From Blastocystis sp. Blastoise (taxonomy: Eukaryota; Protista; Bigyra: Opalinata): DNA of 64,000 bases. A program made the position numbers and the translations under genes. The stretch lies in assembly GCA_039096225.1 (NCBI GenBank), contig JBBPEB010000026.1:558001-622000 (forward strand), given 5' to 3'. The notes under the pieces were generated by a model. That model made no database searches. It worked only from the letters and a program-made list of their open reading frames with translations, and had not been told where the DNA came from. Positions 19,329 through 44,748 of the stretch are shown piece after piece; position 1 is the stretch's first letter, and the number at the start of each line of letters is the position of its first letter.

Positions 19329-20086
19329 ATTCTTCCGTTCTTCGAACTGCAGAAGGGGGTATGCAAACCCCGCATAGAGTCTGCGCGACGCGCGCAGCCA
19401 TAAGCGGGGAAGTCATCCCCCCTTTTTGTTCTCGACGGAAGAATTAATAACATTTCTGAAGTAAAATAACCATGGGAGTGTAGGGTAGTGTGTGTGTGTA
19501 TTTATTTTTCCCATGTTTATTTATTTTTAATTTATTTGTGTTCCGATTCCAACGTGAAACGTATAGTGATCAAGGAGAAACTCATAGTAATCATAAAAGA
19601 AATAAAATACACAGTCCAACCCTCCCCTTTACAGGGAATATTCATGGAAAATGACTCCATCGTTGGTAAAGTGAGTAAAATAATCACGGGAATACAGAAA
19701 GAAATACGAAAAGAAGCACAGAATGTGCTAAATAAACACACACCCCGACCCTCCCTTTAATAGAGAAAAGATGAAATGGATGGTTCTATCTAAAAAGAAA
19801 TAATAAAAATAATCACGGGAATATATAAAAATAAAAATGTATGTATAGTGATCAATAAATAATATAAAAAGTCATGATAATCATAAAAAAAATTTATATA
19901 AAAAGAGTAAAGTGATCAAGGTATGTATTTATAGTGGGTGAAAGAAAAGCTGGTGGTGGTGTGGTCTTGTAAAAAGATGTACCCACCACCACGATTATAA
20001 CGAGAGACTTTTGGAAACATGAGCGACCGATATGGAAAAATATAAATTTTCTAGAACATTCTAGAACATTCTCGAAACTTCTAGAA
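19329..20086 (+). repeat. Left viral TIR (758 bp)
   Basis: Reverse complement of 43991-44748. Mirror ORFs in the ORF track are identical and coordinate sums are constant (64077). Confidence 0.96.
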
Positions 20087-20096
20087 CATTCGAGAA
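20049..20096. promoter_or_regulatory. Heat-shock-element-like array upstream of recombinase 1
   Basis: Ten alternating TTC/GAA pentamers at 5-bp spacing. Confidence 0.7.
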
Positions 20097-20184
20097 CATG
20101 AGAATCTTAGATATTTTATTTTGATTTTCTTATGTATTATTCTTTTGAAAATAGAAGTTTTAAAGATTCTACTTAAGAAAAACA

Positions 20185-21120
20185 ATGAAAAATACAAATT
20201 ATGACAAGTATCTTTTGGTTATACAAAATTCAAATTATTCTGATATTTGGAAAAAACGTTTAACCAATTATTTCAATTTATATATTTTCCCATTACCATT
20301 TAAAAAGTTCTCAGAATTCTTAAAGAATCCTTATTCATTCATGGATTATATGGTAAATGAACGTAAAATCAAAATTAGTCCAATGAAATCGTTATGTGAA
20401 TTGATATTATTTATTATACGTAATGTTTCTTCATTAAATAAAGAAGGTATTTTAAATAAATGGTGTGAATTTTATGTGATTATTAATGCAATGTATGAAA
20501 AATATCTGGATAATAAGAAACGTACTTTAATTCAAGATCTTATTAAAGATGGTATTACGACTCCATATTTACATGAATATCACGATAAATTAGAAAATTA
20601 TAATCCATTACGATTAATATTAGATTTTTACTCCTATCTTCCTCCTGCTCGTGCTGATTATGCTCAATTATTCATTCTAACTCCAGAAGATACTATTGAT
20701 CCAGCTATTCATAAGAATTATATTGTTTATGATAAAGAGAAACATACTGGTTCTATTCTATTAAATGATTATAAAACTGCTGGTAAATACTCTACAATTC
20801 AATTAGATGCACCAAAAGAATTGATTGAAGATCTAGAATTACTCTTAAAAAGAAATCCAAATCGTAAATTTATATTTGAATCTTCTGTACGAACTGGATT
20901 TACTACTAAAGCATTTGATTGGTTTGTGAATAAGCATTTAAAACAAATCCATCCAAAATTGACCATTAATGCATTAAGAAAATTATATGCTACAACTACA
21001 ACCAATACATTCCAAGATATAGAAAATTCTGCTTCTGCTTTATGTCATAATGATTATACACATATTAATTCTTATGTATCTTTAGAAAATAATAATTTAT
21101 TTAAAAAATTAATTGAATAA
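20185..21120 (+). CDS. Tyrosine recombinase 1
   Basis: Catalytic order PPARADY (R), YKT (K), NALR (HxxR-like), LCH (H), NSY (Y). Confidence 0.82.
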   Translation: MKNTNYDKYLLVIQNSNYSDIWKKRLTNYFNLYIFPLPFKKFSEFLKNPYSFMDYMVNERKIKISPMKSLCELILFIIRNVSSLNKEGILNKWCEFYVIINAMYEKYLDNKKRTLIQDLIKDGITTPYLHEYHDKLENYNPLRLILDFYSYLPPARADYAQLFILTPEDTIDPAIHKNYIVYDKEKHTGSILLNDYKTAGKYSTIQLDAPKELIEDLELLLKRNPNRKFIFESSVRTGFTTKAFDWFVNKHLKQIHPKLTINALRKLYATTTTNTFQDIENSASALCHNDYTHINSYVSLENNNLFKKLIE

Positions 21121-21193
21121 TTTTATGTTTTCATGCTTGTTTTGTTTTAAATTTGAATATAACTAAACAACTAGTAATAAAAGGATATAAAAA

Positions 21194-21568
21194 TTAATTA
21201 AAAGGTAAGAAAGATAGAGTATTATTATTATTTTGATATTGATTTTGTTGTTGATTACTTTTCATAGTAGGCATAAACATATTATTGGGTTGAATAAGAT
21301 TCTTATCATCTTGATATTGATTCTCATTCTTCATATATTGTTTATCCAATAGCATTTCAAGACGTTGATGAATCACAGGATCATCTATATAAAGTAGCAT
21401 ATTTCTACAATAACTTAGTTGTAAATCACTAAGATTTTTGTTGTTATTGTTATTTAAAAATTGTTCTAATAGATTCGCTATTTCATTCTTTTTAGATTTA
21501 ATTCCTTCTTCTTTTAGATTCTTCATCACACGACAAAAATAAGAATAACTAAGATATTTCTTGTTCAT
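21194..21568 (-). CDS. Viral hypothetical protein, 124 aa
   Basis: ATG-started ORF with an HSE array at 21664-21686 upstream. No family recognised. Confidence 0.55.
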   Translation of the reverse strand: MNKKYLSYSYFCRVMKNLKEEGIKSKKNEIANLLEQFLNNNNNKNLSDLQLSYCRNMLLYIDDPVIHQRLEMLLDKQYMKNENQYQDDKNLIQPNNMFMPTMKSNQQQNQYQNNNNTLSFLPFN

Positions 21569-21912
21569 TATTTAAATTAACCAATGATTAAACAAAACAA
21601 ATTAATTATATAAAATACTAATATAATAAATTAAAGATTCTACAAATAGAGCCAGTTCAAAATGAATGTTCTAGAATGTTCTAGAACGTTTCTTGGACAT
21701 ATAAAAGTAAAGTAAAATATATATAATAATAAGAACAATTTCAATAACTGACAGTATTTCATTTACATTCTCTAAAGTTTCTGCACTACGATCTAAGTAG
21801 TAATTGCCAAATCGTTTCTTTGTCATAATAGTATTAAATATTAAACAAAACAAATTAATTATACAAAATATTAATATAATAAATTAGAGATTCTAGAATA
21901 TTCTAGAAGGTT

Positions 21913-22500
21913 TTAACAAGGCATAAGATTTCCATTAGAAAGTAAATAAAGTAAAGAATAATAAAAGCAACCATTTGCATTACTTGTAGTTTTTTGGTGT
22001 TGAATAGGATTATATTGAATATTATGATTTTGAATAAATGATTTTGAAAAAGTAGGTTTATTTCCTAATGATGAATAGTGTTCTATATTTTTATTACCAT
22101 TATAAATAACAGCTTCAAAATGACCATTATAAGGATCACTAGGACTTTCATGGAAGATCATATTAAATTTAGTTTGATCTTGATCTATATTTTGTTCAAA
22201 ATCATCATAACTATTATAATAATTATAAGATTGAGAATTCGTTTTATTTAATTGTTTCATAACATTTTCAGCACGATCACAAGCAACAGAAGAGGTAGGT
22301 TTATTTAAATAAGCATAATTATATAATTGAGATATTAAAGAATTGGGTATATTACAATATTGAGATAGAGTTTGTTTGAAATTATTAGGGGATCTAGGAG
22401 TAACATGACGAGTTTTATCAGATATAATAGGATTATCACAATTCATTGAATTTTGAATAAGTTTTTCATCTTTACTCTTTACCAGATCCCCTCCCCTGAG
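21913..22500 (-). CDS. Adenain/Ulp1-like maturation cysteine protease, probably expressed by -1 frameshift from the upstream ORF
   Basis: GHFEAV (His), IEHYSSLG, QHQ (oxyanion Gln), NGCFYYSLLYL (Cys). The listed start at 22533 is TTG. Slippery heptamer at 22506-22500. Confidence 0.78.
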   Translation of the reverse strand, partial: LRGGDLVKSKDEKLIQNSMNCDNPIISDKTRHVTPRSPNNFKQTLSQYCNIPNSLISQLYNYAYLNKPTSSVACDRAENVMKQLNKTNSQSYNYYNSYDDFEQNIDQDQTKFNMIFHESPSDPYNGHFEAVIYNGNKNIEHYSSLGNKPTFSKSFIQNHNIQYNPIQHQKTTSNANGCFYYSLLYLLSNGNLMPC

Positions 22501-24230
22501 TTTTTTGATAACATATACTTCTTTTCTTTCCAAAACATTTGCTCACCTCTATCTAATATTTCATTATTATCCATCTTCTGTTTTATAATTTGTAATTGTT
22601 TTAAATCATTCTTAGCTACTTTACGTTTCCTTTGAGCTACTTGTGCAGGTATTACAAAATCTGTATAAGCTGTTACTAATGGAGGTAAATCACCACCTTT
22701 TTTCTTTTTAGCTTCTTTTCCTCTTCTCATTCGTTCTAAGAATTCTTCTTTACTTAATTTAACTCGACCACCATAACCTCTACGCTTAGATCTTCTTGCA
22801 GCTATTCGTTTATCCCTTTCATCTTCTTTCCATTTTCTATCGACTTTCTCCTTATCATTTTGAGGGAAACCATAAATCTTATAATAATAACTTTGTTCAT
22901 CACGAGACATTGGCTTATAAGGTTGAGGAGGTTGAGGTTGAGGAGGTTGAGGCTGTTGAAGAGGTTGTCTTTGAGGAGGTGGTATATTGTTTTGAGGTAT
23001 ATCAAATGTATCTACATTCAATTCAGGTTCAATTTGTTGTTGTGGTTGAACTGGTGATGCTGGAGGAGGTGGTTGACGAACAGGAAGATTTTTTCTAAGT
23101 TGTTGTTTCATACTGTGCAAAATTCTATCTGGCATTACTTGATCTAATATTTCTTCATCTCTTTCAATATCATCATAACCATCATGTATTGTTCCCATAA
23201 CTATACCATTACCTATTTGTTTTTTCATTTCATTTAATGCTTGTTGACGTTTTAATTTTTCCATTTCAAATTCAATATCATTTAATTCACTTGACTGTTG
23301 TGCCAAATGTGTATCATAATATGTTTTTCTACCTTTAGCAAAAGAATCCATACCTTTATCAACTACACCTAAAAGAGATGGTGCTAAAGTTGAAAATGAG
23401 TCCCAGAATCCACCACCTCTTTTAACTCTTAATATACCATCACCACTTTGAGCTGAATCTAAATCTATATATTTTGGTATAATTGAAGGTCTTAACATTC
23501 TTCTTAATTTTGGATTATTAATCATTTTCTTATTTTTAATTGCATTCATAATTGCTGAAGCAACAGATATAGGAATCTTTCCACCACGTTTAATTTTATG
23601 TTCATAGAATCTTTTGAATTCATCATCAAGATCATGATGACCATCACCAACATATTGAGCTAAAATAGCTAATGCATCACGAGCTTTTCTATTAGCTTTT
23701 TTATCTACAATAGCATCTCTTATATCTAATACATTTCGTTGATACATATCTTTTACTTTATTTTTAATTGCATCACCAATACCAGAACCTTGATTATTCT
23801 CTAATTTATTGATTTCTGATTTATTTGGAATAATTCCTCTACCAGATTTACGTCTTGGTTTACATGGATTTAATACTTTATATTGACGATCTTCACCATC
23901 TATTTTATCTTCTTCTGGACCAGCTGCTTTCATTACACCTTTACCTGCTGCTCTAGCACGAATTAAAGCACCATTTCCTTGTGGAACAGCATCTTTACCA
24001 AATGTTTTAGAACGATCTACATAATCATCTTCTTTACCATCATGTATTTCTTTACTTTCTAAAGTAGACACAGGCATAGATGAATTTGGACCTATTTCAT
24101 GAAATATTGGATTATATTGATCCATTTTATGTAATGGCTGTGTATTATATCGCCTATATTCTTTTCCTGTTGAAATTAAATTCATACCAAAAGTACCAGG
24201 ACTTGGCATTCCTAAGATACAACTTTGCAT
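22479..24230 (-). CDS. Putative virion core polyprotein (many GG/GxG sites, basic and proline-rich segments)
   Basis: 583 aa with KRGG twice, GYGG, KKGG, seven or more GxG motifs and an Arg/Lys-rich C-terminal region. Function inferred. Confidence 0.6.
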   Translation of the reverse strand: MQSCILGMPSPGTFGMNLISTGKEYRRYNTQPLHKMDQYNPIFHEIGPNSSMPVSTLESKEIHDGKEDDYVDRSKTFGKDAVPQGNGALIRARAAGKGVMKAAGPEEDKIDGEDRQYKVLNPCKPRRKSGRGIIPNKSEINKLENNQGSGIGDAIKNKVKDMYQRNVLDIRDAIVDKKANRKARDALAILAQYVGDGHHDLDDEFKRFYEHKIKRGGKIPISVASAIMNAIKNKKMINNPKLRRMLRPSIIPKYIDLDSAQSGDGILRVKRGGGFWDSFSTLAPSLLGVVDKGMDSFAKGRKTYYDTHLAQQSSELNDIEFEMEKLKRQQALNEMKKQIGNGIVMGTIHDGYDDIERDEEILDQVMPDRILHSMKQQLRKNLPVRQPPPPASPVQPQQQIEPELNVDTFDIPQNNIPPPQRQPLQQPQPPQPQPPQPYKPMSRDEQSYYYKIYGFPQNDKEKVDRKWKEDERDKRIAARRSKRRGYGGRVKLSKEEFLERMRRGKEAKKKKGGDLPPLVTAYTDFVIPAQVAQRKRKVAKNDLKQLQIIKQKMDNNEILDRGEQMFWKEKKYMLSKNSGEGIW

Positions 24231-24305
24231 TTTTTTATTTCAATTATAAAATTATTTATAAACAAAACAAATATATTAATAAAAAATAAATTTAACATTA
24301 AAAAT

Positions 24306-24899
24306 TTATAATTTAGTTAAATCAATAATAGTATCATTGCTGTTAGTATTCTTCGTAGATTTATCGAATACTTTAATAGAACGTGCATATAAACCAATAT
24401 AATACTTGTTATTATAACGATGAATACCATGTATTGTAAATAATACTTTACATAACGTATTTGGTGGAATATACTTTTCACGTATTTCTTCGTAAGTTAA
24501 CTTAGGATCTTTACCGATATTAATCTTCTTATCTCTTTTATCAGTAATATCAATAGTAACATTCTTCGATGCATTAATAGGTACTTTAATTGTAATCTTA
24601 TATTTACCATTATCCATACGTACAAAATTAACAATATCACCATCATGACATAATTCACATAATTTACGATAAAGTTCTTTATAAGCAGTTAAGAATACTT
24701 GATTATCATCTTCAATTGTTAATAAAGTCCATTTATCACGTGTAACAATATAACCAAATAAACATGGTGTAGCATCAGTAGAAATACATACACGATGATT
24801 ATTATTTAAAAGAACAGCATTTTCTTTGGTGTCATCCCATTGTAAATTAAAGTTAGAAGTATCAAGAATAGTAGGTTTTTTAAATTCAGTTGTAGACAT
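24306..24899 (-). CDS. Probable ssDNA-binding (OB-fold) protein
   Basis: TDATPCLFG near the N-terminus and the C-terminal beta-rich CKVLFTIHGIHRYNNKYYIGLYARSIKV resemble viral gp2.5-like SSBs. Recognised by eye. Confidence 0.5.
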   Translation of the reverse strand: MSTTEFKKPTILDTSNFNLQWDDTKENAVLLNNNHRVCISTDATPCLFGYIVTRDKWTLLTIEDDNQVFLTAYKELYRKLCELCHDGDIVNFVRMDNGKYKITIKVPINASKNVTIDITDKRDKKINIGKDPKLTYEEIREKYIPPNTLCKVLFTIHGIHRYNNKYYIGLYARSIKVFDKSTKNTNSNDTIIDLTKL

Positions 24900-24976
24900 T
24901 TTTAGTTAAGTATTTAGTAAAAATATAAGTATTTTAATACTAATATTTTACGATATTCTTTTCAAATGAATCAATT

Positions 24977-25024
24977 TTCGAGAAGGTTCTAGAAGGTTCT
25001 AGAATGTTCGAGAAGGTTCTAGAA
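24977..25024. promoter_or_regulatory. Heat-shock-element-like array upstream of SSB-like gene
   Basis: Ten alternating TTC/GAA pentamers. Confidence 0.7.
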
Positions 25025-25220: not shown

Positions 25221-25748
25221 TTAATGATCAAATATTTCAGACATAGAAGGAATAGAATATTCGGATAATAATGAAACAATTTCTTTAGAATCATCATGAA
25301 TCTGTTTTAAATCTTGTTTCTGACTTTCAATCTTTGTTTTTAAATGATCAACAGTACAATAAATACCATTTAATATATTATCAGCTGTTTCAATAGTTTG
25401 AAATAAAGATTCGAATTGACTGGATATATTTGTTAACTCCTCATTTGTAAATAATAATGCTTGCTTATCAGGATTTGTATTTACTTGATCTTGAAATTGT
25501 ATTGGTTGATTGTTAACCGAATGATATCTATCTGGATTTTTAGATACGTAAACATCATTGATTGGATGAATTTCTTGAGGTGGATCTTCAAACATGATTT
25601 CGTCACGTGAATTAAAACAGAAATCATTATCATTGGGTAAAGCCATAGGATTTTCAGAAACACTATTTTCAAATGGATTCAACAAGGGGGATATCATGGC
25701 TTGACCGAAAGGGGATAAACTGGCAGAAAGACTATCAGGAATTTCCAT
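25221..25748 (-). CDS. Viral hypothetical protein with C-terminal coiled coil
   Basis: 175-aa ATG ORF, acidic, heptad-like C-terminus, followed by the TGTTTTGTT motif. Confidence 0.6.
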   Translation of the reverse strand: MEIPDSLSASLSPFGQAMISPLLNPFENSVSENPMALPNDNDFCFNSRDEIMFEDPPQEIHPINDVYVSKNPDRYHSVNNQPIQFQDQVNTNPDKQALLFTNEELTNISSQFESLFQTIETADNILNGIYCTVDHLKTKIESQKQDLKQIHDDSKEIVSLLSEYSIPSMSEIFDH

Positions 25749-26146
25749 GATTATTTAAACCTTCAAAAGTATTTTTATACAATATATTAAATATACTATT
25801 TTTAGTGTACAGTTCTTCATTTCAGTTGCTAACAAAAGCCTATTGCTTCCAGCTGGAAAATAAGCCAATAAAATAACTTATTTCGTATGACACATCGTCG
25901 TCATCGTCTAATTGTGTTTTACTAATTTTTTTATCCAATCAAATTACAGATGCCGACTATACTCGTCATTGAAACACAAATAAAAAATGCTAAGTCGACA
26001 AAATTAGCCAATCAAATGAACCTTCTAGAACATTCCATAGAGATTCTACACTGTCTCCTAGAATATTTAATATTCCATTTAAATGTATTATTTATTTCAT
26101 TTTGATAAATACAAATTTTCTCTCTGTAACGATATTCGCGATTATA

Positions 26147-26770
26147 ATGCAATTTAATCTTTCTGCTGATTCCCGTAAATGTCTTCAAACTGTTCGTATG
26201 GAACTTCTAAAGAATTCTAAGAAGGCTGTTGAAGTTCATAAGAATGTTCTTCGTGATATTGATTTACATCAGTCTCAATTGAATAGAGAAAAGAATCTAT
26301 TGGGTATTGCAAAATCTAAAGAACGTCTTGCTTCTTTCGAAGTCGAAAACTATAGATCAGCTTTAAAACGTATAAACGCGGTTATTAAAGGTCTTGAAGA
26401 TTATGAAGAATTCGCTGCTGATATTTATACTCAACAACTTAATGAAGAACAAGATATTCAAGATATTATCAATACTGAAGATCTTTTAGAAAGTGATAGA
26501 ACTACTATTTTATGTTCTGAAGATTCTAAAGAACATTCGAATTCTCAAGATGATGATTTTGATATTATGAAATTCCATATGGAAGATGGATTTCTTTATG
26601 ATGAAAAAGGTAAAGTTTATTCTTATGAAGTTGTTCATGCTAAGAGTATTAACAAGATTAAAAGAGATCCTTCAAAACAAATGTATTTCTGGGATGGTAT
26701 TTTATATGATAAAAATGGATGGCCTCATTCATGTACATATATTAATAGTCAAGAACCAATTGAAATTTAA
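26147..26770 (+). CDS. Viral hypothetical protein (coiled coil plus duplicated DGxLYDxxG motif)
   Basis: First ATG at 26147. EDGFLYDEKG and WDGILYDKNG repeats. Short HSE at 26018-26035. Confidence 0.6.
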   Translation: MQFNLSADSRKCLQTVRMELLKNSKKAVEVHKNVLRDIDLHQSQLNREKNLLGIAKSKERLASFEVENYRSALKRINAVIKGLEDYEEFAADIYTQQLNEEQDIQDIINTEDLLESDRTTILCSEDSKEHSNSQDDDFDIMKFHMEDGFLYDEKGKVYSYEVVHAKSINKIKRDPSKQMYFWDGILYDKNGWPHSCTYINSQEPIEI

Positions 26771-26880: not shown

Positions 26881-27018
26881 TTCTAGAAGGTTCTAGAAGG
26901 TTCTAGAATGTTCTCGAAGGTTCTAGAACATTTAAAAATATAAAGTAATATTTACTATTATAGAATGTTCTTGAATGTTCTAGAATGTTCTAGAAGCTTC
27001 TAAAACTGACTTCTAGAA
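26881..27018. promoter_or_regulatory. Double heat-shock-element-like array upstream of primase-helicase
   Basis: 26881-26928 has ten pentamers, 26963-27000 has eight, and there is a TTCTAGAA at 27011. Confidence 0.72.
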
Positions 27019-27086
27019 TCTTTAATATATTATTTGTTTTGAATTTTATGCCATATTTATTTTCATTATTTATAAGTCAAATAATC

Positions 27087-30000
27087 ATGGAAAATTCACA
27101 AATTCATTTTGTTTATACTTTTGGTTCCTTTAATCATGATAACTCAAAAGATAATCATAGTGAAATTATTATACCAAATCCATTACCATTTTATAAAAGT
27201 CTGTTTACTAATTATCAAAATCCAAAAGAATTATTACATTATATTGATTGTACTCCTTGTAATACATCAACTAATTATAGAAGATTATGGTTTGATTTAG
27301 ATTATCACCAAATATCAAATGATTTTTCTTTTCTAACAGATTCTTTTATTCATGAATTTATAGAAGAAATGTGTAATCATTGTATTCATTATTATAATCA
27401 AGAATTTATTTCGCTTCTGTATACAAAGAAAGAAGTGAATAAGAAGACAGTTCATAATGAAATACATTATTCATGGGGAATTCATATATATACAAATTGG
27501 TTTGTAAATGGTGATTATTTATTTTTCTTATATAATAGTATGATTCTGAATACCAAATTGGTTGATTTATGTAAAATGAATAATTTAGATATAAAAGAAT
27601 TCATTGATTATAATGTTATTGGTAAACCCAGAAAGAATAATGGTTGTATGTTTCTTGGTTGTAGTAAAGATAATTCTCCATCTACTTATAAATTATATGA
27701 AGAATATACCAATAAAACATGGAAGAAAATAGATGATGAAATCGATGAACATTATTATTTCAAAACATTATTGAATTATAAGAATGAAGATGATATTATA
27801 AGTGATATTATTAATCCTATTATTTTTTATAAATTAAAACAATATTCACGTTATAAACGTTATTATGCAAGATTAAATAATTGTTCACGTACTATATTAT
27901 GTTCTATACAAGATATTAAAGATATTCCTATGTTGATTTCTACAGATACTATATTGGATACTACAGCATCTAAAGAAGCTTTATTAGAACGATATTTATT
28001 ATTGATTGGTTCTATTGAAGATATGAATTATTTTGAATCCCATAATACTTGGTATAAATTATGTTGTGCAGCAAAACAGATTTGTAATACAACAAGAGGA
28101 TTAGAATTATTTAAAAATTATTCATTACGTTATGGTCATGATCGAAGTGATGATGTAATTGAATCTACATGGAATCATATACAAGTTGATCCTACTCATT
28201 TATCGAATAATTATATTTTGAAGATATTAATGGATAATAAATTATTTAATAAAGATGATGATAATGATTTCATATTTATGTCTATTTTAGAATGTATTCA
28301 ATCCTTTAATCTTGTAGATTCACAAACATTAGTTATGTTATTTCAATTATTAGAATTTAATGAAATTGTTTCTATTATATTAGATAAAGATAATTTTATC
28401 TTATATACATTTGATGAATATAATATCTTAAGACGTTGTAAGAATAATTATGATATTAATTTCTTTGAAACCAAAATAACTACATTTATGAAATCGATTG
28501 TAGAGAAATTCAAATTATCAAGATTATATTCCAAAGAGAATGAACAACATCAAAAAATAGTTGATAAAATAATGTCTGCTTCTGTTACTAATGAATATCA
28601 TTATAAAGAATGGTTGAATCGTTATTTGAAGACTTATGGTAAATCTTATAAAGAATATTTAGATACGTATATGGTTCATAAAGAACGTGTTATCTATACA
28701 CAACTTGGTTATTTATATCCAAAAGAATCAACAGAAGAAGATCCTAGACAATATTATATCCAACCATATCATAAAGAAGATATGGTGTTTGAAGATTTAT
28801 TAATTGATACTGAATTTAATGTAAGTTGGAATATTAATAATGAACAGAAAGATATTATCCAATTATTTGAACAACATATTGCAAGATATTGTGAATTCGA
28901 TAAGAAATATGAAAGTATTATGTTACGTATCTTAACCACTGCTTTCTATGTCAATACTCAGAAAACTGTTTCTTATATATTATATGGTAGTACAGGTAGT
29001 AATGGTAAAACAATAACAACTGATTTAATTTCTCGTATTGTAGGTAGTAATCAATGTATTATAGTAAATCCAGATAATTTAGAAGAAACATCTATAGCTC
29101 CTAAGATTGTAGATATGTCTAATAAGACTATGTATTATATGAATGAATTAATAGAAGAAGATGTTACTGGTAGAAAGAAAACATTTAATCCATTCTCTTC
29201 TAAAGTCTTTAAAGAAATAGCAGAAAAGAAAGAAGGTGCTAGTGCTCGTAAATTATTCAGTAATATATTTACAAAAGTTCATTTCACGGGTACTTTATTT
29301 ATGACAAGTAATATCCAACCTACTGCTGTGAATGCTGGTCCTATTGAAAGAAGAGTTTGTTTCTTACCATCATGTTGTCGTTATTTCCCTCCTGGTAATG
29401 CTAATTTATATGAAGATTATGTAGATCATAATTTACCGAAACGTAAACAGACAGTAGAAAAGAGATTGAAACCCAATCATTATGAAATGGATTATACTTT
29501 ATCCGATAAATTCTATCAGAATCGTTCAATTATCTTTAGTTATCTAGTAAGTAATTATTTCTATTCTAGTATGCAATTAGATATGCATGAATTAGATAAT
29601 GAATATCATATAAGTGAATGTAAGAAACGATTCTTTGATCGTAGTACAGAAGGATATGATTTGAAATCTTTTGTTGATAACCATATTACTATAGATCCTT
29701 ATTATTTGAATGTAGTTACTATTGAAGATATTTTTAATAGTTATAAGAAAGTGAATAATAATAATCAATTTACGATTAAGAAAGATTTAGATAAATTTAC
29801 AAATGCTTTATTTGGTTGTTTAAGTAGTAAAGATACATTTAATTCTATAGATATTGTGAATATTCATAGAAAACATACTTCAAATTTTTATAAGGGAGGG
29901 AATGCTATTGGTATTTGTGGTTTAATGATTGATAATACTTATAATGAATGTGTAGATACAGATTTATTCTGTTTATCCAATTGTTTATCTAAAAAAGAAG

Positions 30001-31997: not shown

Positions 31998-32420
31998 TTA
32001 TAAATGAAGAGATTGAACAATAGAATCAACACTTATATTTAATTTCATTAATTGAACAGCTAATTCTTGTATTGATTCATTTTGATTAGAATCAATTTCT
32101 TCTAATTCATTCAAGACTTCTGATATATGTTTGACTTCTTCTTCTATAATCGTTTGTTGTATTTTCATTGTCTTATAATAGACTTTCTTTGTTTGTGGAT
32201 TACAACAATTACAATGAATATCTATATTTTTAACAATTAATTGAAAGAATTCAGTTGATTTCTCAAATAAACATTTTATAGCTTTTATAATAAATTCTAA
32301 TAAAGTATTTTTCTTTTCTATTTCTTCTTCGGATAATGTGGTTGTTGTTGAACTATCTGAACTTGTTGAACTTGTACTTGATAAAGAATGTAAGGATTCA
32401 GATACAGATTTAGGCTCCAT
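31998..32420 (-). CDS. Viral hypothetical protein, 140 aa
   Basis: Ser/Thr-rich N-terminus, HCNCC motif, coiled-coil-like C-terminus. Confidence 0.55.
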   Translation of the reverse strand: MEPKSVSESLHSLSSTSSTSSDSSTTTTLSEEEIEKKNTLLEFIIKAIKCLFEKSTEFFQLIVKNIDIHCNCCNPQTKKVYYKTMKIQQTIIEEEVKHISEVLNELEEIDSNQNESIQELAVQLMKLNISVDSIVQSLHL

Positions 32421-36647: not shown

Positions 36648-37871
36648 ATGGAAGGATTCCCAAGACAATTCTTACCTTCAAAGGCAAATCAAACTATTAA
36701 ACCTGTACAAATTCCTATTCTAGTTTCTACAAGTCAAGATTTATTAAATCAACCTTATCCATTTGAATTCTTATATAATTCAGTGGATAGCCCTTATATT
36801 GATTTCAGTAATTCATTCTTAGAACTGAATTTCAATATTACTGGTACTAGAGACAAAAATTCAACATCTTCAGTTGTACAACATTCTAATATCTATAGTA
36901 TTATTGATAAAATTACTACAGATCTTACGTTTGTATCTCCTACGGGTCAAGATATTCTTATTAATTATTCTGAATCTTCTATTGAATCCAGTAAAGCAAG
37001 AAAATTTGTTACTATTAAAGAATTAAGTAAAGATGAAATTGATAAATCTATGTATAGTATGACAGAATGCTTATATAATAACACGTTGAGTAGTATTGCT
37101 GGAATGGAAATGAAAGAAAAAGCTCAAGTTATTATTCCTTTATCTCTTATTACTGGTCTTGGTACATTTGATTGTGCTATTAAAGTAAAATCTTTGAAGA
37201 TGCAATTCGTTACAAATTATTTAAAGAATCTATTTACCGGTACCACTGTAATCACTGCATTGAAATTTGATCGTGTTTATATTCATCTTCAACAAATTTA
37301 TGATATTAATTTTGGTAATGATCCACGTGCTTTGATTAAATGTATTCCTAATAATTGTCAGATATCTGCATTCACTACACCTGTTTATTCACAAGCATCA
37401 GTATCAGGTACACCAACTCCACAACAATTCTTATCCAATAGAAGTGTTGTTTTCGTACCTGATTATTGTATGTTATACTTCACAAATCAAGAGAAGAGCA
37501 TGATTCCTATTAAAACTGAATTATTAAAATCATGTCAATTCCAAATTGGTGGTCAAAATATCTTACCAAAGACGGATTTCCCTACTACGTATAAAACAAC
37601 GAATCCATCACAAATTATTCCTAATGCTATGCTTTATAATACTTGGAGATGTAATAGTCATCCTCAATCTCCTTTAAACGGTGAAAAGTGGTATGAACAA
37701 CCTATTTATATATTCCCTATTTCAAGTGTTGTTGATGTCAATACGCGTAGTGGTTGTGAAGTTAATATCTCATTATTAACTGAATATACTGGTGGAACTG
37801 TTACTGGTCCTTATACTTTATATGCTCATTTTATATTTGTTAAATTTGTTAGAGATGGTGCTACCAATTAA
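36648..37871 (+). CDS. Major capsid protein paralogue 2 (double jelly-roll type)
   Basis: YIDFSNSFLELNFNI, NIYSIID, IPLSLITG, PDYCMLYF, PIYIFP. Beta-rich, 407 aa, next to penton and ATPase. Confidence 0.72.
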   Translation: MEGFPRQFLPSKANQTIKPVQIPILVSTSQDLLNQPYPFEFLYNSVDSPYIDFSNSFLELNFNITGTRDKNSTSSVVQHSNIYSIIDKITTDLTFVSPTGQDILINYSESSIESSKARKFVTIKELSKDEIDKSMYSMTECLYNNTLSSIAGMEMKEKAQVIIPLSLITGLGTFDCAIKVKSLKMQFVTNYLKNLFTGTTVITALKFDRVYIHLQQIYDINFGNDPRALIKCIPNNCQISAFTTPVYSQASVSGTPTPQQFLSNRSVVFVPDYCMLYFTNQEKSMIPIKTELLKSCQFQIGGQNILPKTDFPTTYKTTNPSQIIPNAMLYNTWRCNSHPQSPLNGEKWYEQPIYIFPISSVVDVNTRSGCEVNISLLTEYTGGTVTGPYTLYAHFIFVKFVRDGATN

Positions 37872-37969: not shown

Positions 37970-38635
37970 ATGACATCAATATCTCATCTAAGTAAAATTA
38001 CAAGTCAAATCTGTCATGAACAATTCAATTATACTTTGGATTTAGTAGGTAAAAATATTACTCATATCAATACATTAGTGAATACAAGTGATATCATTAA
38101 TATCCCATCTTTCAGAATAACTGAAAATAATGCAACAGCACATACATTTCCAGCTGGTAACTATTCATTGGAAGAATTCTTTGAGAAATTAATTGAACTT
38201 GGTAAGAAGATGACAATATCTGTATCTGGACAAACGAGTGCATTCTATTATGATAAAGAAACAAAAACATTTGGTACGTATAGTGGATTCAGAAGAAGTC
38301 TTAGTAATAAAGAATTCTTTTATTATTTAGGATTAGATGATGAATACTTTAATACACCAATTACTTACAGTGATGAATATATATCTAATAATATTTCATG
38401 GTATAAGATCTATATGTTACGTGTGTATTGTGATATTATTAATAAAGATAATGATTTGATTTCTATTCCTTTATATGCTAAACAAGGATTTGATAATACA
38501 TTTGCTTTAAGTGATTTATCTATTCCATGTATTGATGGTAAATATACAGATATCCAATGGGAAATATATGATCAATTAAATAATCCAATTGATTTATCAA
38601 ATACAAATCTTTATATATACTTTACTGCATCTTAA
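37970..38635 (+). CDS. Minor capsid protein (penton, single jelly-roll type)
   Basis: FPAGNYS, YYLG, LRVYCDII, IQWEIYDQLNNPIDL. Confidence 0.75.
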   Translation: MTSISHLSKITSQICHEQFNYTLDLVGKNITHINTLVNTSDIINIPSFRITENNATAHTFPAGNYSLEEFFEKLIELGKKMTISVSGQTSAFYYDKETKTFGTYSGFRRSLSNKEFFYYLGLDDEYFNTPITYSDEYISNNISWYKIYMLRVYCDIINKDNDLISIPLYAKQGFDNTFALSDLSIPCIDGKYTDIQWEIYDQLNNPIDLSNTNLYIYFTAS

Positions 38636-38704: not shown

Positions 38705-39742
38705 ATGGTGAATAAAATAAATCCATTAAAAGAAACACGTAAAGGATGTGGAGTCTTAGAATTTAAATATGGAAAATCACATCATAAAACATATGAATCA
38801 AAATTTATATTGATTATTGCAAGAACATTCTCAGGAAAATCTTTCTTAACTGTGAATCTCTTATGTTCTATGGATCTTAAAAATAAATATAAACAAGTCA
38901 CAGTAATTTGTCCTGATGCATCCAATAAGAATGAATGTTATACATCCTTTCAAGATATTTGTGAACATGCTGGAATTGATTATAAATGGTATGATTCTGT
39001 AGATGATAAATTTAAAAAGATTAAAACTGTTGATGAATTAGTCAATACATATAAATTACCAGAACATAATTTTATTGTATTGGATGATATCTATCCATTA
39101 TCTAGACAAACCAAACAATTGATTGTATCTATATTATCTAAAGGTCGTCATTATAAACAGAATGCTATTATATGTCTTCAAAGTCATACAGATGTCACGA
39201 ATCAATCTATATTAAGTCAAGTATCTCATTTCTTTATTAATAGTCAAATCTTAAAACGTGATCCTGGATTCTTACCAGATAAATTAAAGATTATGCCATC
39301 GAATCTAAATGAAATTCTTACAGATGAAGAATTAATGAATGATCCACATCAATTCTTTATGTTAAAACAAGGTAGTGATGATTTAACGATATGGACAAAT
39401 CCTGATTGTGGTAGTAAACAGAATGTATATAAGATGGTAAAGAAACGGAAATGGACAGAAGAAGATAGTGAAAAAGAGAAACGAGAAGAACAAGGTGAAG
39501 TATCAGGTAGTGGTATTAAACGTCCTAATGAACATATATCTACATATGAAAAGAAAATGAAGAAGTTTTTACCTGTTGAAGAAGAAGTCTCATTGAAAGG
39601 TATTGAACGAGATGAAAAAGATAAACCTAAAGAATCCATCTTACAAATCATACAAGATCAAATCATACAAGATAGTCAACGACGCATTTTCAATCCTTAT
39701 TTAAATAAAAAACATTATTCTGGTTATCCTTCTTTTCATTAA
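38705..39742 (+). CDS. A32/FtsK-HerA family DNA packaging ATPase
   Basis: IIARTFSGKS (Walker A variant), IVLDD (Walker B), KGRHY (Arg finger), ICLQ. Confidence 0.87.
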   Translation: MVNKINPLKETRKGCGVLEFKYGKSHHKTYESKFILIIARTFSGKSFLTVNLLCSMDLKNKYKQVTVICPDASNKNECYTSFQDICEHAGIDYKWYDSVDDKFKKIKTVDELVNTYKLPEHNFIVLDDIYPLSRQTKQLIVSILSKGRHYKQNAIICLQSHTDVTNQSILSQVSHFFINSQILKRDPGFLPDKLKIMPSNLNEILTDEELMNDPHQFFMLKQGSDDLTIWTNPDCGSKQNVYKMVKKRKWTEEDSEKEKREEQGEVSGSGIKRPNEHISTYEKKMKKFLPVEEEVSLKGIERDEKDKPKESILQIIQDQIIQDSQRRIFNPYLNKKHYSGYPSFH

Positions 39743-39795
39743 TTTTTTTATATTTTAATTTGTTAAATAAACCATAATTATTTTATTGTTTTGTT

Positions 39796-40833
39796 ATGAG
39801 TTCAATTACAAAAAGATATTTAAAACAAAATTGTGATCCACGATTATTTGGAGGATCACCACCAAAATCAAATAGACGTGATCTTTATCATAAACGTTAT
39901 GTAAGATATGGAGGAACTGGTTTTGAAGAAATTGTTAGACAACAAACTAGAGATGCTGATTGGGCTGACTTTAAAAATGGTGTCTATACTGCATTACCTA
40001 TTTTAGGTACATTAGGAGCATTTGCTGGATATAATTATTATCAGAAACGTAAAGAACAAAAACGTCAAGAAAAAGCAAAAGAAGAAAAGAAAAGACAATT
40101 TGAAGAACATATTGAAGATGCTAATAGAGATGATGAATTATATAACGATGATGCTACTTATCAACCAAAGAGAATAACAAGAAAAATGATGGCTGATGAT
40201 GATAAAGATTATAATAATGCAAATCTTGAAGATGAAAATTATGATGATATATTTGGTCAAGGTATACATAGAAGGCATCAGAAACATCGTAAAGAACATG
40301 GGAGTCACCGAGAAAAAGAAAAGAAAACAAGTAAATTCGTAACTCCTCAAATAAGAATTATTGCTAAGAAGGCTATTCGTTCTAATAATATAAAGTCTAA
40401 TAAGAAGAAATTACAAGATATTAAAGAACGATTACCTAAAAATGATGAGCATGTGTCTGTACGTGATATTGTTAATGTCGTTATCGATAAAGAATATCCT
40501 ATGGATCCAAAACAAAAGCATTCTATTATTGCGAATACTGCTATTAAAACTATTAAAACGATTGTTCCTATTGTAGTGAATGCATTAAAATACTATTATC
40601 CTTCTCTTGGTATCCCTATTGATTTCGCTTATAATATGATTACTACCGATGATGATAAGAAACGTAAAGAAACTGCTGATAACTATTTTAAAAATCCTAG
40701 TGGAAGTGGTGTTACAAAAGAGAATGCTGAACGTTGTGGTGGTGCTCTTGTCAACTCTACATCCTTTGATACTACTACTAATTTAATTATTAATCTTGTT
40801 CAATTCTTCTTAAAAAAATTCCATTTAAATTAA
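39796..40833 (+). CDS. Putative virion core/membrane-associated protein
   Basis: LFGG, RYGG, FGQGI, SGSGV and RCGG motifs, hydrophobic ALPILGTLGAFAGY and basic tracts. Confidence 0.5.
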   Translation: MSSITKRYLKQNCDPRLFGGSPPKSNRRDLYHKRYVRYGGTGFEEIVRQQTRDADWADFKNGVYTALPILGTLGAFAGYNYYQKRKEQKRQEKAKEEKKRQFEEHIEDANRDDELYNDDATYQPKRITRKMMADDDKDYNNANLEDENYDDIFGQGIHRRHQKHRKEHGSHREKEKKTSKFVTPQIRIIAKKAIRSNNIKSNKKKLQDIKERLPKNDEHVSVRDIVNVVIDKEYPMDPKQKHSIIANTAIKTIKTIVPIVVNALKYYYPSLGIPIDFAYNMITTDDDKKRKETADNYFKNPSGSGVTKENAERCGGALVNSTSFDTTTNLIINLVQFFLKKFHLN

Positions 40834-40909
40834 TTATTTTAACTTTTATTATTTCATAATTAATTATTTGTTTTGTTATATAATTATTTTTAAATTAATA
40901 CAATAAATA

Positions 40910-42088
40910 ATGCAAAGTAATTTAGGAGATAGTGTAACTCTCTATGATATTTTATCAAGAAATCAGAAAAAACAATCTTGGGATCCATGGTTACCCAATT
41001 CATATATTTGTCAAGATGAACAACCAGTACAACCATTAGCACATGATCCTAATGCACAAGGATCTATGTATAGTTCAATGGCAGTTCAAGCATTAAGAAA
41101 TCATGGTCAATCACCTGAAGATATGTTTATAGCTACTATGAATTCAGCTAAAGCTAATGGAGATACTGCAAGATATTCATCAATGTTATCTCAATGGCAA
41201 ACGAATTATGGTGTACCTACTACAAGTAAGATATGGTATGATGCTAGTAATCCTAATAATTATCAATATGAAACATTATTATCTTCAATAAAAGGCTTAA
41301 ATGGATTGAATTCAGAAGCATATAAACAGAATAAAGAGAATTATGAATTCTATTCAAATGCTCAAAAAGATATGTATGATCAATTAAATAATATTTCATA
41401 TCAAATTAAAACCAATAATGATGACATTCATGCTGAAGCAGCTTCAATGAAACAAAATATGACTAGTAATTATGAAAATCTACATAAAGATAACGAATAT
41501 TTGAACTCAAAGATGGATACATATGAAAATAATCGTCAATCAGATAATAATATTACAAACTCTAAAATGGATACATATGAAAATAATCGTAAAAAAGATG
41601 TTAACAATACAAATTCAAAGATGGATAAATATGAAAATAATTGTCATCAAGACTATAACAATACACAATCTAGAATGGATAAATATGAAAAGAATCGTCA
41701 AAATGATACTAATAAAACAAACGCTAAGATGGATAATTATGAGAGTAACCGTAAAAAAGATGCCAAAGCATTTGAAGATAAGATGGATGAACAAGGTATG
41801 CATTATGATATTGTTGAAAGTGGTATACCATTCACAATTTATGTTAATGGTAAGAACTCAAAAGTAATATGTAATAATCCAGAGTTTAAAGATCAGGTAT
41901 TCATTCTTAAAGATGAAAAAATTTATGTTAGATCAGCTGAAAAGTCAGGCTATATATATAAAACGTACGGAACAATGCCACTTGATGAATTCATTATCAA
42001 ATATAATGAAGGTTTATTTAATGAAAATAAGGCACTTCCTGATAAAGAACATAGTGGATTAAGAAATCAGCAAAACGATGAAACTTAA
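40910..42088 (+). CDS. Viral protein with 18-aa tandem repeats (coiled-coil/fibre-like)
   Basis: About five copies of NSKMDxYExNRxxDxNxT, a 54-bp unit at roughly 41504-41775. Confidence 0.6.
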   Translation: MQSNLGDSVTLYDILSRNQKKQSWDPWLPNSYICQDEQPVQPLAHDPNAQGSMYSSMAVQALRNHGQSPEDMFIATMNSAKANGDTARYSSMLSQWQTNYGVPTTSKIWYDASNPNNYQYETLLSSIKGLNGLNSEAYKQNKENYEFYSNAQKDMYDQLNNISYQIKTNNDDIHAEAASMKQNMTSNYENLHKDNEYLNSKMDTYENNRQSDNNITNSKMDTYENNRKKDVNNTNSKMDKYENNCHQDYNNTQSRMDKYEKNRQNDTNKTNAKMDNYESNRKKDAKAFEDKMDEQGMHYDIVESGIPFTIYVNGKNSKVICNNPEFKDQVFILKDEKIYVRSAEKSGYIYKTYGTMPLDEFIIKYNEGLFNENKALPDKEHSGLRNQQNDET

Positions 42089-42212
42089 TAGACTATATTA
42101 TATTTACTTATTTATGCAATATTATGTTTGCCATTTAAATTATAATTTTGTTAATATATATATATATATTTTTGTTTTGTTTTAAAAATCATAATTATTT
42201 TATTAAACTAAA

Positions 42213-43703
42213 ATGATACAAAGTGCTCGTTTAAATGTTTCGAATAAAGGATTAGTAGGCGTAAATCATCGTGCTACTGGTCATGAATATCGAAATTATA
42301 TTGTTCCAGGATCTATTCCTGATGGAGAAGAACGTCATCCAATTAATTATTCTATTGCTCCTAATTCTTTAGCTGCTGTTAAACGAATAGAAAGTAATAT
42401 GGTTAATAGAGCAACGTCAAATCCATTCTATTCATATTTGTCAGAAACCAGACAAGATGTTATACAAAGTTCATTAGAAGAATCAGAAGAAACTGAACCA
42501 ATAGATGAAGGATCTGGGCTATTACCTGATGGTAGAATTCCAAAGAACTTTACAAGAAAACTTATTTATGCTCATGATTATGTCTTACCTTATATGAAAC
42601 AAAATCATATGTCTGATTATTCTAAATATTCTAGATTATTAAATCCTCGTACAATTGATAGTGCTATTGATTTTACTAAAAGAGATCGTGATGGTTACTT
42701 ATATTCTAGAGGTGGTAATTTATTTTCTAATATTTATCACACTGTAAGTGATGTATACAATGTGTCTGATAAATTAACTGGAGGTATTAATAACATCACT
42801 CATGGAATAAGTAATGCTGTTGATTATGGTGCAAATAAATTCAAAGATCTCAAGAATTGGTGGAGAGATATTAATGTTGATCCAAAAGAAGGATTCAATG
42901 ATATTAAAGGAAAACTTGTAAGTGATAGAAATAATTTATATGATAATTGGAAATTAACTGATGATAATGAAGCTAAGAAAAAGAATAAAATATTAGCTGA
43001 TAATTATTTTAGATTTGCTCATATGTCAGGTAATGATACGAAACAACAAAGACTTAACAAAAGTAAATCTTTAGAAGATCAAGCAAAAACATTTCATAAT
43101 AATTATATTCCCTATGCAGAAAACCCAACATTCGTTAATAAAGTTGTTAATACTGCAACAAATGTAGGAACACCAATTGTTAATGGTGTTAAAAAAGTTG
43201 CAAACTCTGTTGTTAGTGGTGTAAATAATTTATACAATACTTTTTCTGGATTTTTATTTGGTAAGAATCCAGAGGAAGAAATACCACAAACAAAAAATCC
43301 AATAGAAGCAAATAATAATGTTATACCAACTTCTTCATCTACTCCTGATACTCTAACACAAGAAAATATTCATAATATTACTATTGAAGATTCAAATCCT
43401 CCAAATTTAATTCCTCTTATGAATGATCCTACTGTTCCTTTACCTGATACTGTTCCAATGTCTCAAGCAGTCACGAATAATTTCACTCCAAATATTACAC
43501 CTGTAGCCCCGATTCCCAATCCAGTAGAAAATGTCACTCTTGTAAATAATAATAAAAGAAATAAAAACGAAGACGATGAATTTCAATCATTTGATGAAGA
43601 TGATGGTGAGGTATTTTATGATCTCGAAGAAGGTAATGGATTACGTAGAAAAAGACGTATTTCAAAAAATAAAAAATTAAGAAATAAACGTAGAAAACAT
43701 TAG
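42213..43703 (+). CDS. Putative virion core protein, N-terminus homologous to 22479-24230
   Basis: TGHEYRNY motif, EGSGL, SRGGNLF, a Pro-rich region, and EGNGL followed by a very basic tail. Confidence 0.55.
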   Translation: MIQSARLNVSNKGLVGVNHRATGHEYRNYIVPGSIPDGEERHPINYSIAPNSLAAVKRIESNMVNRATSNPFYSYLSETRQDVIQSSLEESEETEPIDEGSGLLPDGRIPKNFTRKLIYAHDYVLPYMKQNHMSDYSKYSRLLNPRTIDSAIDFTKRDRDGYLYSRGGNLFSNIYHTVSDVYNVSDKLTGGINNITHGISNAVDYGANKFKDLKNWWRDINVDPKEGFNDIKGKLVSDRNNLYDNWKLTDDNEAKKKNKILADNYFRFAHMSGNDTKQQRLNKSKSLEDQAKTFHNNYIPYAENPTFVNKVVNTATNVGTPIVNGVKKVANSVVSGVNNLYNTFSGFLFGKNPEEEIPQTKNPIEANNNVIPTSSSTPDTLTQENIHNITIEDSNPPNLIPLMNDPTVPLPDTVPMSQAVTNNFTPNITPVAPIPNPVENVTLVNNNKRNKNEDDEFQSFDEDDGEVFYDLEEGNGLRRKRRISKNKKLRNKRRKH

Positions 43704-43777
43704 TTAATTTTAATTTGTTTTATTTATTATTATTTTTAAAAACTAAACAATTTGTTTTGTTATTAATAAGAATTAAT

Positions 43778-43945
43778 TTAAAAATCAATAAATTTTTTTA
43801 TATAATCTTCATAATCATCTTCACTTTCAGTTTTAATAGTATCCACTTCAGAATCACTATCACTTAATTCATCAACTTCAAAATTTCCATAAGGTTTCCA
43901 AGTACCTTCTTTATAATCTGGAGCAAATTGCTTTGGAGAATCCAT
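43778..43945 (-). CDS. Small acidic viral ORF (55 aa), below the ORF-track cutoff
   Basis: MDSPKQFAPDYKEGTWKPYGNFEVDELSDSDSEVDTIKTESEDDYEDYIKKFIDF*. Directly downstream of the HSE array in the right TIR. Confidence 0.55.
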   Translation of the reverse strand: MDSPKQFAPDYKEGTWKPYGNFEVDELSDSDSEVDTIKTESEDDYEDYIKKFIDF

Positions 43946-43990
43946 AATATATAGTATAAAAATAGAAAAAACGAATAATACAATTTATTA

Positions 43991-44748
43991 TTCTAGAAGT
44001 TTCGAGAATGTTCTAGAATGTTCTAGAAAATTTATATTTTTCCATATCGGTCGCTCATGTTTCCAAAAGTCTCTCGTTATAATCGTGGTGGTGGGTACAT
44101 CTTTTTACAAGACCACACCACCACCAGCTTTTCTTTCACCCACTATAAATACATACCTTGATCACTTTACTCTTTTTATATAAATTTTTTTTATGATTAT
44201 CATGACTTTTTATATTATTTATTGATCACTATACATACATTTTTATTTTTATATATTCCCGTGATTATTTTTATTATTTCTTTTTAGATAGAACCATCCA
44301 TTTCATCTTTTCTCTATTAAAGGGAGGGTCGGGGTGTGTGTTTATTTAGCACATTCTGTGCTTCTTTTCGTATTTCTTTCTGTATTCCCGTGATTATTTT
44401 ACTCACTTTACCAACGATGGAGTCATTTTCCATGAATATTCCCTGTAAAGGGGAGGGTTGGACTGTGTATTTTATTTCTTTTATGATTACTATGAGTTTC
44501 TCCTTGATCACTATACGTTTCACGTTGGAATCGGAACACAAATAAATTAAAAATAAATAAACATGGGAAAAATAAATACACACACACACTACCCTACACT
44601 CCCATGGTTATTTTACTTCAGAAATGTTATTAATTCTTCCGTCGAGAACAAAAAGGGGGGATGACTTCCCCGCTTATGGCTGCGCGCGTCGCGCAGACTC
44701 TATGCGGGGTTTGCATACCCCCTTCTGCAGTTCGAAGAACGGAAGAAT
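43991..44748 (-). repeat. Right viral TIR (758 bp)
   Basis: Reverse complement of 19329-20086. Confidence 0.96.

Follow-up and report, generated by a model that had tools for sequence, protein, structure and literature searches.

The window analysed here, a stretch of 64,000 nucleotides from one contig of the Blastocystis sp. Blastoise genome, harbours an element of 25,420 bp that is bounded by perfect terminal inverted repeats (TIRs), sits within a host transposon gene and carries genes of the kind found in Polinton-like viruses (PLVs) (Table 1). An inverted-repeat search and a base-by-base reading of the junctions gave TIRs of 758 bp with 0 mismatches, exactly as the original prediction, made from the sequence alone, had described them, while a longer version of 763 nt returned by a repeat search (19324-20086 and 43991-44753) was dropped, since its outer 5 positions include 2 mismatches. 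Apart from a 157-nt pair located farther out, no other inverted pair of note is present in the window. The interior of the element contains 18 open reading frames (ORFs) of 124-1016 codons and one possible ORF of 51 codons, and 88% of the DNA between the TIRs is covered. The G+C content of the element, 22-34% per kb, is similar to that of the flanks and, since stop codons are frequent at such values, ORFs of this length are taken as genes and not as products of chance. About 17 uninterrupted ORFs had been noted beforehand; none of the 18 now counted is broken, with 0 stops, 0 frameshifts and 0 insertions in the window copy. Most of them are blank in Pfam, PHROGs and NCBIfam.

The fold of the candidate major capsid protein (MCP) was a point on which the original prediction could fail, and MCP1 (490 aa) models as a double jelly roll. 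Its AlphaFold2 model (pLDDT 77.8, pTM 0.81, from a 16-sequence alignment) matches the capsid proteins of an iridovirus, the chlorovirus PBCV-1, Sputnik, mavirus and PRD1, as well as vaccinia D13, in Foldseek searches of the PDB (E 3e-9 to 5e-7, probability 1.00), with TM values to these solved structures of only 0.36-0.42. The best BFVD match by far is an uncharacterised protein of 'MELD virus sp.', A0A8S5L5M3 (E 9e-17, TM 0.57/0.66, 11% identity). By this predicted structure, MCP1 is a double jelly-roll MCP. Neither the single MCP1 sequence nor the MCP profile matched any PDB sequence; a profile search returned 12 matches among 1.84 billion representatives, and a search of 5.8 billion clusters gave 14 relatives, of which five come from the same genome while all others are ENA or Logan proteins. 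As judged from these sequence searches, MCP1 belongs to a capsid family without link to any described group. MCP2 (407 aa) is a paralogue of MCP1 (29% identity over 419 columns, E 2e-42) that has its own orthologue, P0116, at 47% identity and, thus, the duplication that generated both proteins predates the split of the known lineages.

The morphogenesis set announced for the element (MCP, penton, A32 ATPase and adenain-type protease) is borne out in part: the MCP and a packaging-type ATPase stand, while the penton and the protease are without library support and are proposed from position and short motifs only. The 345-aa protein matches phrog_2666 (head and packaging, E 1.2e-10) and FtsK_SpoIIIE over the Walker A region (E 0.05), and both Walker A and Walker B can be read in its sequence. 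These sequence features support a packaging-type P-loop ATPase, an assignment that does not imply A32 membership; no match to the Pox_A32 model was found, the PDB matches are at chance level and a tblastn search of phage records was empty. The 221-aa protein occupies the position of a minor capsid protein and shares a 21-residue motif with orf811 (E 0.008-0.02); homology between the two is not claimed, as hhalign shows only these 21 columns. In turn, orf811 has no match in Pfam, PHROGs or NCBIfam and no similarity to MCP1 or MCP2, and it is possibly a vertex or spike protein.

Replication is represented by a predicted primase with a D5-like SF3 helicase (1016 codons, or 1000 aa from the annotated start at 27087), which matches TIGR01613 primase_Cterm (P4/D5-type, E 1.1e-8) and phrog_1156 DNA primase (E 2.5e-9), with DUF5906 in 5 of 7 relatives and a weak PriCT_2 signal (E 0.02); searches of the PDB with the single sequence and with the profile gave no match. 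The two most conserved peptides of this family are N-terminal and contain Asp-x-Asp and His, and we infer that they may represent the archaeo-eukaryotic primase (AEP) motifs. As had been predicted, neither polymerase B nor an rve integrase has a Pfam match in any of the 18 ORFs, and the dense coverage of the interior leaves no room for a hidden gene of either kind. This absence is not unusual in itself, since a primase-helicase, a tyrosine recombinase and TIRs form the typical set of PLVs (PMC10120064, PMC7805220).

Two recombinases had been predicted as well, and here the signals from YR1 (311 aa) and YR2 (598 aa) do converge on tyrosine recombinases, while every match is sub-threshold. Pfam Phage_integrase aligns with the catalytic part of YR1 (E 0.084), and XerA is its sole PDB sequence match (E 0.12). 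The AlphaFold2 model of YR1 (pLDDT 72, pTM 0.48) is shallow, the homologue search having given one divergent cluster only, and its last 30 residues, among them the Tyr, are poorly modelled; nevertheless, 36 of the 41 listed Foldseek rows are Cre, Xer, lambda Int, Tn1549 Int, topoisomerase IB or TelA (E 0.06-1.1), TelA ranking below Cre and Xer. An N-terminal piece of YR2 matches Phage_int_SAM_5 (E 0.061), the hhalign comparison of YR2 with the YR1 family extends over 247 collinear columns (E 0.0035, probability 9%), and the Arg, Arg and His-x8-Tyr motifs are collinear in the two proteins. Both are probably tyrosine recombinases, given these convergent signals.

The element splits, once, a pogo-like host transposase gene (DDE_1, E 5e-19). 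The left piece comprises 149 codons, and the alignment of the right piece with an intact 472-aa paralogue encoded just upstream starts at residue 157 of the paralogue (29% identity, E 9e-42); both pieces are still open. The split gene belongs to an outer pogo-like transposon with its own 157-nt TIRs (16988-17144 and 45846-46002), which encloses the virus-like element, and a second pogo-like copy (~17235-18801, ORF 17255-18673) also lies inside this nest of transposons (16988-46002). The flanking cell genes encode a GH35 beta-galactosidase, a TatD DNase and two large surface proteins. The proteins of the window are 97-100% identical to WA158_ 'hypothetical proteins' of Blastocystis sp. Blastoise, a tortoise isolate, and the low G+C content of the window fits the 21-23% reported for tortoise isolates (Lind et al. 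2025, PMC12129017). A tRNA-Cys (GCA) gene at 47432-47503, the sole Rfam/ARAGORN match in the window, is located ~2.7 kb to the right of the element and is not considered an integration target, as it is not at a junction.

At an identity of 90% or above, 20 or more accessions of MCP1 are on record, distributed over at least 10 large contigs of the Blastoise genome, which corresponds to ~20 near-identical and mostly full-length copies of the element. The median protein difference among copies is 0.58% for the ATPase, 0.6% for the primase-helicase, 0.64% for YR1 and 0.84% for YR2, and it rises to 1.2% for MCP1, 2.0% for orf811, 2.2% for MCP2 and 5.2% for orf583. The window proteins that were tested have the modal length of their counterparts except for orf583 (583 versus 575 aa), and annotated products below modal length are few (1 of 11 for the ATPase, 1 of 12 for orf811, 3 of 15 for YR2 and 3 of the 15 listed for the primase-helicase). 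Locus tags WA158_003341-003368, 003480-003515, 003900-003923 and 007610-007633 point to adjacent pairs of elements on the same contig. The perfect TIRs, the open transposase pieces and the small differences among copies, 0.6-2% in protein, indicate a recent insertion, in line with the age originally proposed, and with no broken gene in the window copy they support an element that is structurally intact and young. Moreover, the same genome contains at least three further lineages with MCPs 41-47% identical, and ENA/Logan clusters at 44-49% identity contain up to 343 sequences. Among the contigs that carry relatives of MCP1, the primase-helicase and YR1 (P0125-P0208; ENA, Logan), the longest recur at 23.7-24.0 kb and 26.9-27.5 kb, which points to genomes of unit length, although contigs can also be broken at repeats by the assembler.

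The tips of the element have a structure of their own. Each TIR ends in a GC-rich imperfect palindrome of 116 nt which, folded as DNA, reaches -31.8 kcal/mol versus -15.5 kcal/mol for shuffled sequences (z = -5.7; 0 of 200 shuffles as good). A perfect 16-nt inverted repeat (19323-19338 and 19435-19450) closes the palindrome at the left tip and extends 6 nt into the left flank, an extension with a composition-based chance of ~0.003, judged post hoc, while the right flank matches at 3 of 6 positions. The direct repeat ATTA was read at both junctions and has one mismatch if taken as a 5-nt repeat. PLVs with tyrosine recombinases and flanking repeats of 5-7 bp are on record (PMC7805220).

Two sequence motifs accompany the genes. 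TTCnnGAA units are the classic binding pattern of the heat-shock factor. An 18-nt pattern of such units, hereafter a heat-shock element (HSE)-like pattern, occurs 21 times in the window versus 0 expected, 19 of these inside the element, and the arrays lie ~60-125 nt upstream of YR1, orf124, the 51-codon ORF, orf197, orf222 and the primase-helicase. Each TIR also bears one array at its inner end. None was found before the capsid genes, the ATPase, orf811, orf140, YR2, orf583 or the genes that follow the ATPase, and the array-free genes are packed head to tail with AT-rich spacers of 50-180 nt. Outside the element, HSE arrays are found at 17210-17232 before a pogo-like transposase gene and at 49867-49884 before a Tc1/mariner-like transposase gene (48744-49829, minus strand), so that the motif is common to mobile elements of three unrelated kinds within this genome. 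A module of ~65 nt, consisting of an HSE pair, an AT-rich core and the motif TTGTTTTGTT, is present twice in tandem (21600-21690 and 21844-21908), upstream of orf124 and of the 51-codon ORF, and the arrays that precede the primase-helicase and YR1 are followed by a comparable core.

The second motif, TTGTTTTGTT in its 10-nt form, occurs 27 times in the window versus 0.55 expected, and its 9-nt core TGTTTTGTT is located 18-85 nt past the stop codon on the coding strand in 15 of the 18 element genes; the three that lack it are orf583, whose end leads directly into the protease candidate, and two genes that belong to convergent pairs. TTGTTTTGTT also follows the GH35, Tc1-like, pogo-like and surface-protein genes of the flanks, with sites at 13993, 18678, 45838, 48678, 55496, 63961 and others downstream of cell and transposon genes. 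A role as promoter of the next gene was rejected, since the motif is also found after the last gene before the right TIR, after a gene of a convergent pair and, once, abutting the next ATG. A similar motif, the downstream gene element, is known from human Blastocystis subtypes, where it presumably directs cleavage at the 3' end; no enrichment of that element is reported in tortoise isolates (Lind et al. 2025, PMC12129017). The variant of the motif, or how far it lies from the stop codon, may be behind this difference.

Taken together, the locus is best explained, with a probability of roughly 0.8, as a PLV genome integrated into that of its Blastocystis host, PLVs being small double-stranded DNA viruses. 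The original prediction of an integrated Polinton-like virus of a protist agrees with this explanation in the capsid, the ATPase and the TIRs, and the host is now named. In such a virus, the element's own primase-helicase would start replication and host polymerases would complete it in the nucleus, while transcription and 3'-end formation would be carried out by the host nuclear machinery. The use of host 3'-end processing is proposed because TGTTTTGTT follows most of the element genes and TTGTTTTGTT also follows cell genes. Two promoter classes may exist, namely a stress-responsive early set marked by HSE arrays and a separately controlled structural set with AT-rich spacers. For integration, a tyrosine recombinase could catalyse a crossover at the short ATTA core of a molecule whose TIR tips lie side by side, a route that would leave a short flanking repeat without a DDE enzyme. 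The capsid might be built of MCP1 and MCP2 together, with the 221-aa and 811-aa proteins as vertex candidates.

Several points weigh against this interpretation. There is no evidence of particles or of a free form. The penton and the protease, two of the four usual morphogenesis genes, are unconfirmed by any method, neither the 221-aa penton candidate nor the protease candidate having a match in Pfam, PHROGs or NCBIfam, nor the latter in the PDB. Back-translated pattern scans with the MCP alignment found no relative in IMG/VR and JGI metagenomes, and a pattern scan of IMG/VR with the primase-helicase alignment found none either. None of the recombinase tests on YR1 and YR2 is individually significant, and only one of the five YR1 models is good, the other four being poor. 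Moreover, the ATTA repeat may be due to chance, as a single insertion site was read, the twenty copies could stem from transposition alone, and the promoter and 3'-end readings are drawn from the position of motifs.

The copies and their setting would also suit a large tyrosine-recombinase DNA transposon that carries capsid-derived genes, no longer makes particles and spreads only within the genome, excising to a circle and inserting again, as Cryptons do. The ~20 near-identical copies in one genome, some of them in adjacent pairs by locus tags, the insertion inside another transposon, the short flanking repeat and the lack of a relative in IMG/VR all agree with an element of this kind. Nevertheless, a pure transposon needs neither capsid genes nor a packaging ATPase and, therefore, ORF integrity counts against it: 18 of 18 ORFs are open here and their counterparts are nearly all full length, including the two capsid genes and the ATPase. 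Likewise, the MCP1/MCP2 pair has been kept since before lineages now 47% identical split, the capsid-side proteins are more variable among copies than the replication proteins, as in viruses, and relatives are found in many ENA/Logan assemblies at about unit length. A transposon without particles is thus considered unlikely.

A virophage-like satellite, which would remain integrated until a giant virus infects and then use the transcription machinery of that virus, as mavirus does in Cafeteria, is suggested by the presence of Sputnik and mavirus capsids among the structural matches of MCP1 and by the behaviour of endogenous virophages and PLVs of other stramenopiles (PMC10945749, PMC8547959). 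However, iridovirus, chlorovirus and PRD1 proteins match MCP1 at least as well as the virophage ones do, the genes of the element share their downstream motif with cell genes and carry host-type HSEs instead of one repeated viral late-promoter motif, and no gene flux between giant viruses of the gut and Blastocystis is reported in a survey of these viruses, all of which makes a satellite of this type highly improbable. An assembly artefact, or foreign DNA fused to that of Blastocystis, was considered because viral contigs are at times mis-joined, but nothing in its favour was found. Mis-assembly is set aside because both junctions lie inside one host transposase gene whose pieces match a paralogue; the interrupted gene is in turn within a transposon with its own TIRs on either side, the G+C content and the downstream motif are the same as in the flanks, and 10 large contigs or more carry the ~20 copies. 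The chance of such an artefact is negligible.

Compared with known systems, the element is closest to the PLVs of oomycetes and other protists (Bellas and Sommaruga 2021, PMC7805220; Bellas et al. 2023, PMC10120064), which are likewise 15-40 kb in size, have TIRs and short flanking repeats, encode a double jelly-roll MCP and a packaging ATPase, occur in many copies per protist genome, and carry a primase-helicase in place of polymerase B and, in place of the rve integrase, a tyrosine recombinase, which is probable in the Blastocystis element. The Blastocystis element differs from them in its orphan MCP family, its two MCP paralogues, its two recombinase candidates, the HSE arrays on early genes, the GC-rich palindromic tips, its host, an anaerobic gut stramenopile, and in not being found in IMG/VR. 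With Mavericks/Polintons in the strict sense it has in common integration, TIR bounds and a double jelly-roll capsid module, but the protein-primed polymerase B and the rve integrase that define them are not in the Blastocystis element, which is therefore not a Maverick/Polinton in that sense. The Blastocystis MELD virus (Starrett et al. 2021, PMC8502044) comes from the same host genus and its virion proteins are likewise unrecognisable by sequence, but it was described with an adintovirus-like polymerase B and an integrase, neither of which is in this element. The 'MELD virus sp.' record of A0A8S5L5M3 is separate from the Blastocystis MELD virus.

More than one divergent MCP gene per genome and links to stramenopiles are also features of the Trimcap PLVs, for which a mixed capsomer has been proposed (PMC7805220; bioRxiv 10.64898/2026.06.19.733378). 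Trimcap viruses have three MCP genes and are aquatic, whereas the Blastocystis element has two paralogues, and no sequence similarity links the two groups. Cryptons, which Goodwin et al. are said to have described in 2003, reportedly have a circular form, crossover by a tyrosine recombinase at a short core and short end repeats. The integration route proposed for the Blastocystis element is the same, but Cryptons are only a few kb long and, unlike it, lack long TIRs as well as any capsid or replication module. The element is a new lineage and variant of PLV in a new host, the novelty consisting of the host, the orphan capsid family, the pair of recombinase candidates, the HSE arrays shared with host transposons and the palindromic tips. 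An undescribed lineage had been suspected from the start, and the capsid family without sequence link argues for it; a literature search found no description of such an element in Blastocystis, and the Blastoise genome paper (Lind et al. 2025, PMC12129017) makes no mention of viruses or such elements.

With regard to the free form of this PLV, two arrangements fit the tips as read in this one copy, namely tips that abut in a circle with crossover at ATTA and a hairpin-ended molecule. In the second, the duplex would be linear and each end a covalently closed hairpin with some mismatches; one of the recombinase-like proteins would act as a telomere resolvase, comparable to those of phage N15, Agrobacterium and Borrelia, and the other as integrase, with the early genes under the control of the host heat-shock factor. 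This arrangement is conjectural and rather improbable. It is raised because a GC-rich imperfect palindromic tip is what an unfolded hairpin copied into duplex would look like, because there is no protein-primed polymerase to copy the ends, because two probable members of the recombinase/resolvase superfamily are encoded versus one integration gene in described PLVs, and because TelA occurs among the fold matches of YR1. The literature search turned up no paper that connects Polintons with either telomere resolvases or heat-shock elements.

No eukaryote of the human gut is commoner than Blastocystis, and very little is known of its viruses. The previous record consists of old micrographs of unidentified particles (reviewed in PMC12835684) and one metagenomic 'MELD virus' with polymerase B (PMC8502044). 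Read as a PLV, the locus anchors a second and different DNA virus family to a sequenced Blastocystis chromosome, with intact junctions and ~20 young copies, and gives a host to capsid and primase-helicase genes otherwise present only in ENA/Logan assemblies (clusters of up to 343 sequences). Its two capsid paralogues, two recombinase candidates, stress-type promoter arrays and palindromic tips are features that can be searched in existing data. For the PLV field, the gain is a host that is anaerobic and associated with animals, together with a capsid family invisible to sequence searches alone.

Table 1. Features of the Blastocystis element and its insertion site (window coordinates).
Feature	Position	Strand	Remarks
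Whole integrated element	19329-44748		Bounded by perfect TIRs; within host transposon gene
Left TIR, 758 bp	19329-20086	+	100% complementary to 43991-44748; HSE-like array at inner end
Right TIR, 758 bp	43991-44748	-	Junction read base by base
Terminal palindrome, 116 nt, GC-rich, imperfect	19329-19444		Mirror copy 44633-44748
ATTA direct repeat	19325-19328 and 44750-44753		Read at junctions
pogo-like (DDE_1) host transposase gene	18881-45733	+	Split once by the element
YR1, probable tyrosine recombinase	20185-21120	+	HSE array precedes
orf124	21194-21568	-	HSE array precedes
Possible 51-codon ORF	21671-21826	-	Hydrophobic stretch; between two copies of the HSE-plus-core promoter module; weak
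Protease candidate	21913-22533	-	His...Glu...Gln...Cys order and spacing
orf583	22479-24230	-	Basic, Pro/Gln-rich; most variable protein among copies
orf197	24306-24899	-	HSE array precedes
orf175	25221-25748	-	
orf222	26102-26770	+	First ATG 26147; HSE pair upstream
Largest HSE-like arrays	26881-27000		TTCnnGAA units
Further HSE-like arrays	20049-20096, 21664-21686, 21891-21908, 24977-25024, 26018-26035, 43991-44028		
Predicted primase / D5-like SF3 helicase	27039-30089	+	Largest HSE arrays upstream
YR2, probable second tyrosine recombinase	30134-31930	-	No HSE; in tandem orf811-orf140-YR2
orf140	31998-32420	-	Ser/Thr-rich N-terminus
orf811	32490-34925	-	Large; divergently oriented from MCP1; varies among copies
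MCP1, predicted double jelly-roll MCP	34999-36471	+	AlphaFold2 model and Foldseek
MCP2	36648-37871	+	MCP1 paralogue
221-aa protein, minor capsid (penton) candidate	37970-38635	+	Position only
Packaging ATPase candidate	38705-39742	+	phrog_2666
orf345	39796-40833	+	Basic; one hydrophobic stretch
orf392	40910-42088	+	18-aa tandem repeats
orf496	42213-43703	+	N-terminal domain in common with orf583

Among the remaining genes, the protease candidate (206 codons if read from a TTG and 176 if read from the first ATG) and the end of orf583 overlap in different frames, with no spacer, upstream array or downstream motif between them, and the two may be on one shared transcript; the ATG-start version of the candidate was not found in the protein collection. 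Gly-Gly sites as targets of this protease were dropped, being just slightly above expectation in orf583, orf345 and orf496. A role as internal virion protein is possible for orf583, which shares with orf496, located at the opposite end of the element, an N-terminal domain of ~60 aa (33% identity, E 8e-6), outside which both proteins are low-complexity and basic; orf496 also has a weak tape-measure-like PHROG match (E 2e-7). The tandem repeat of orf392 comprises 4.8 copies of a 54-nt (18-aa) unit at 41504-41761. Beyond the element, degenerate coding repeats are present at 9087-10921, inside a 664-codon ORF (8712-10706, minus strand), and a tandem array with a period of ~22 nt is located at 58391-58776, between two large surface-protein genes.

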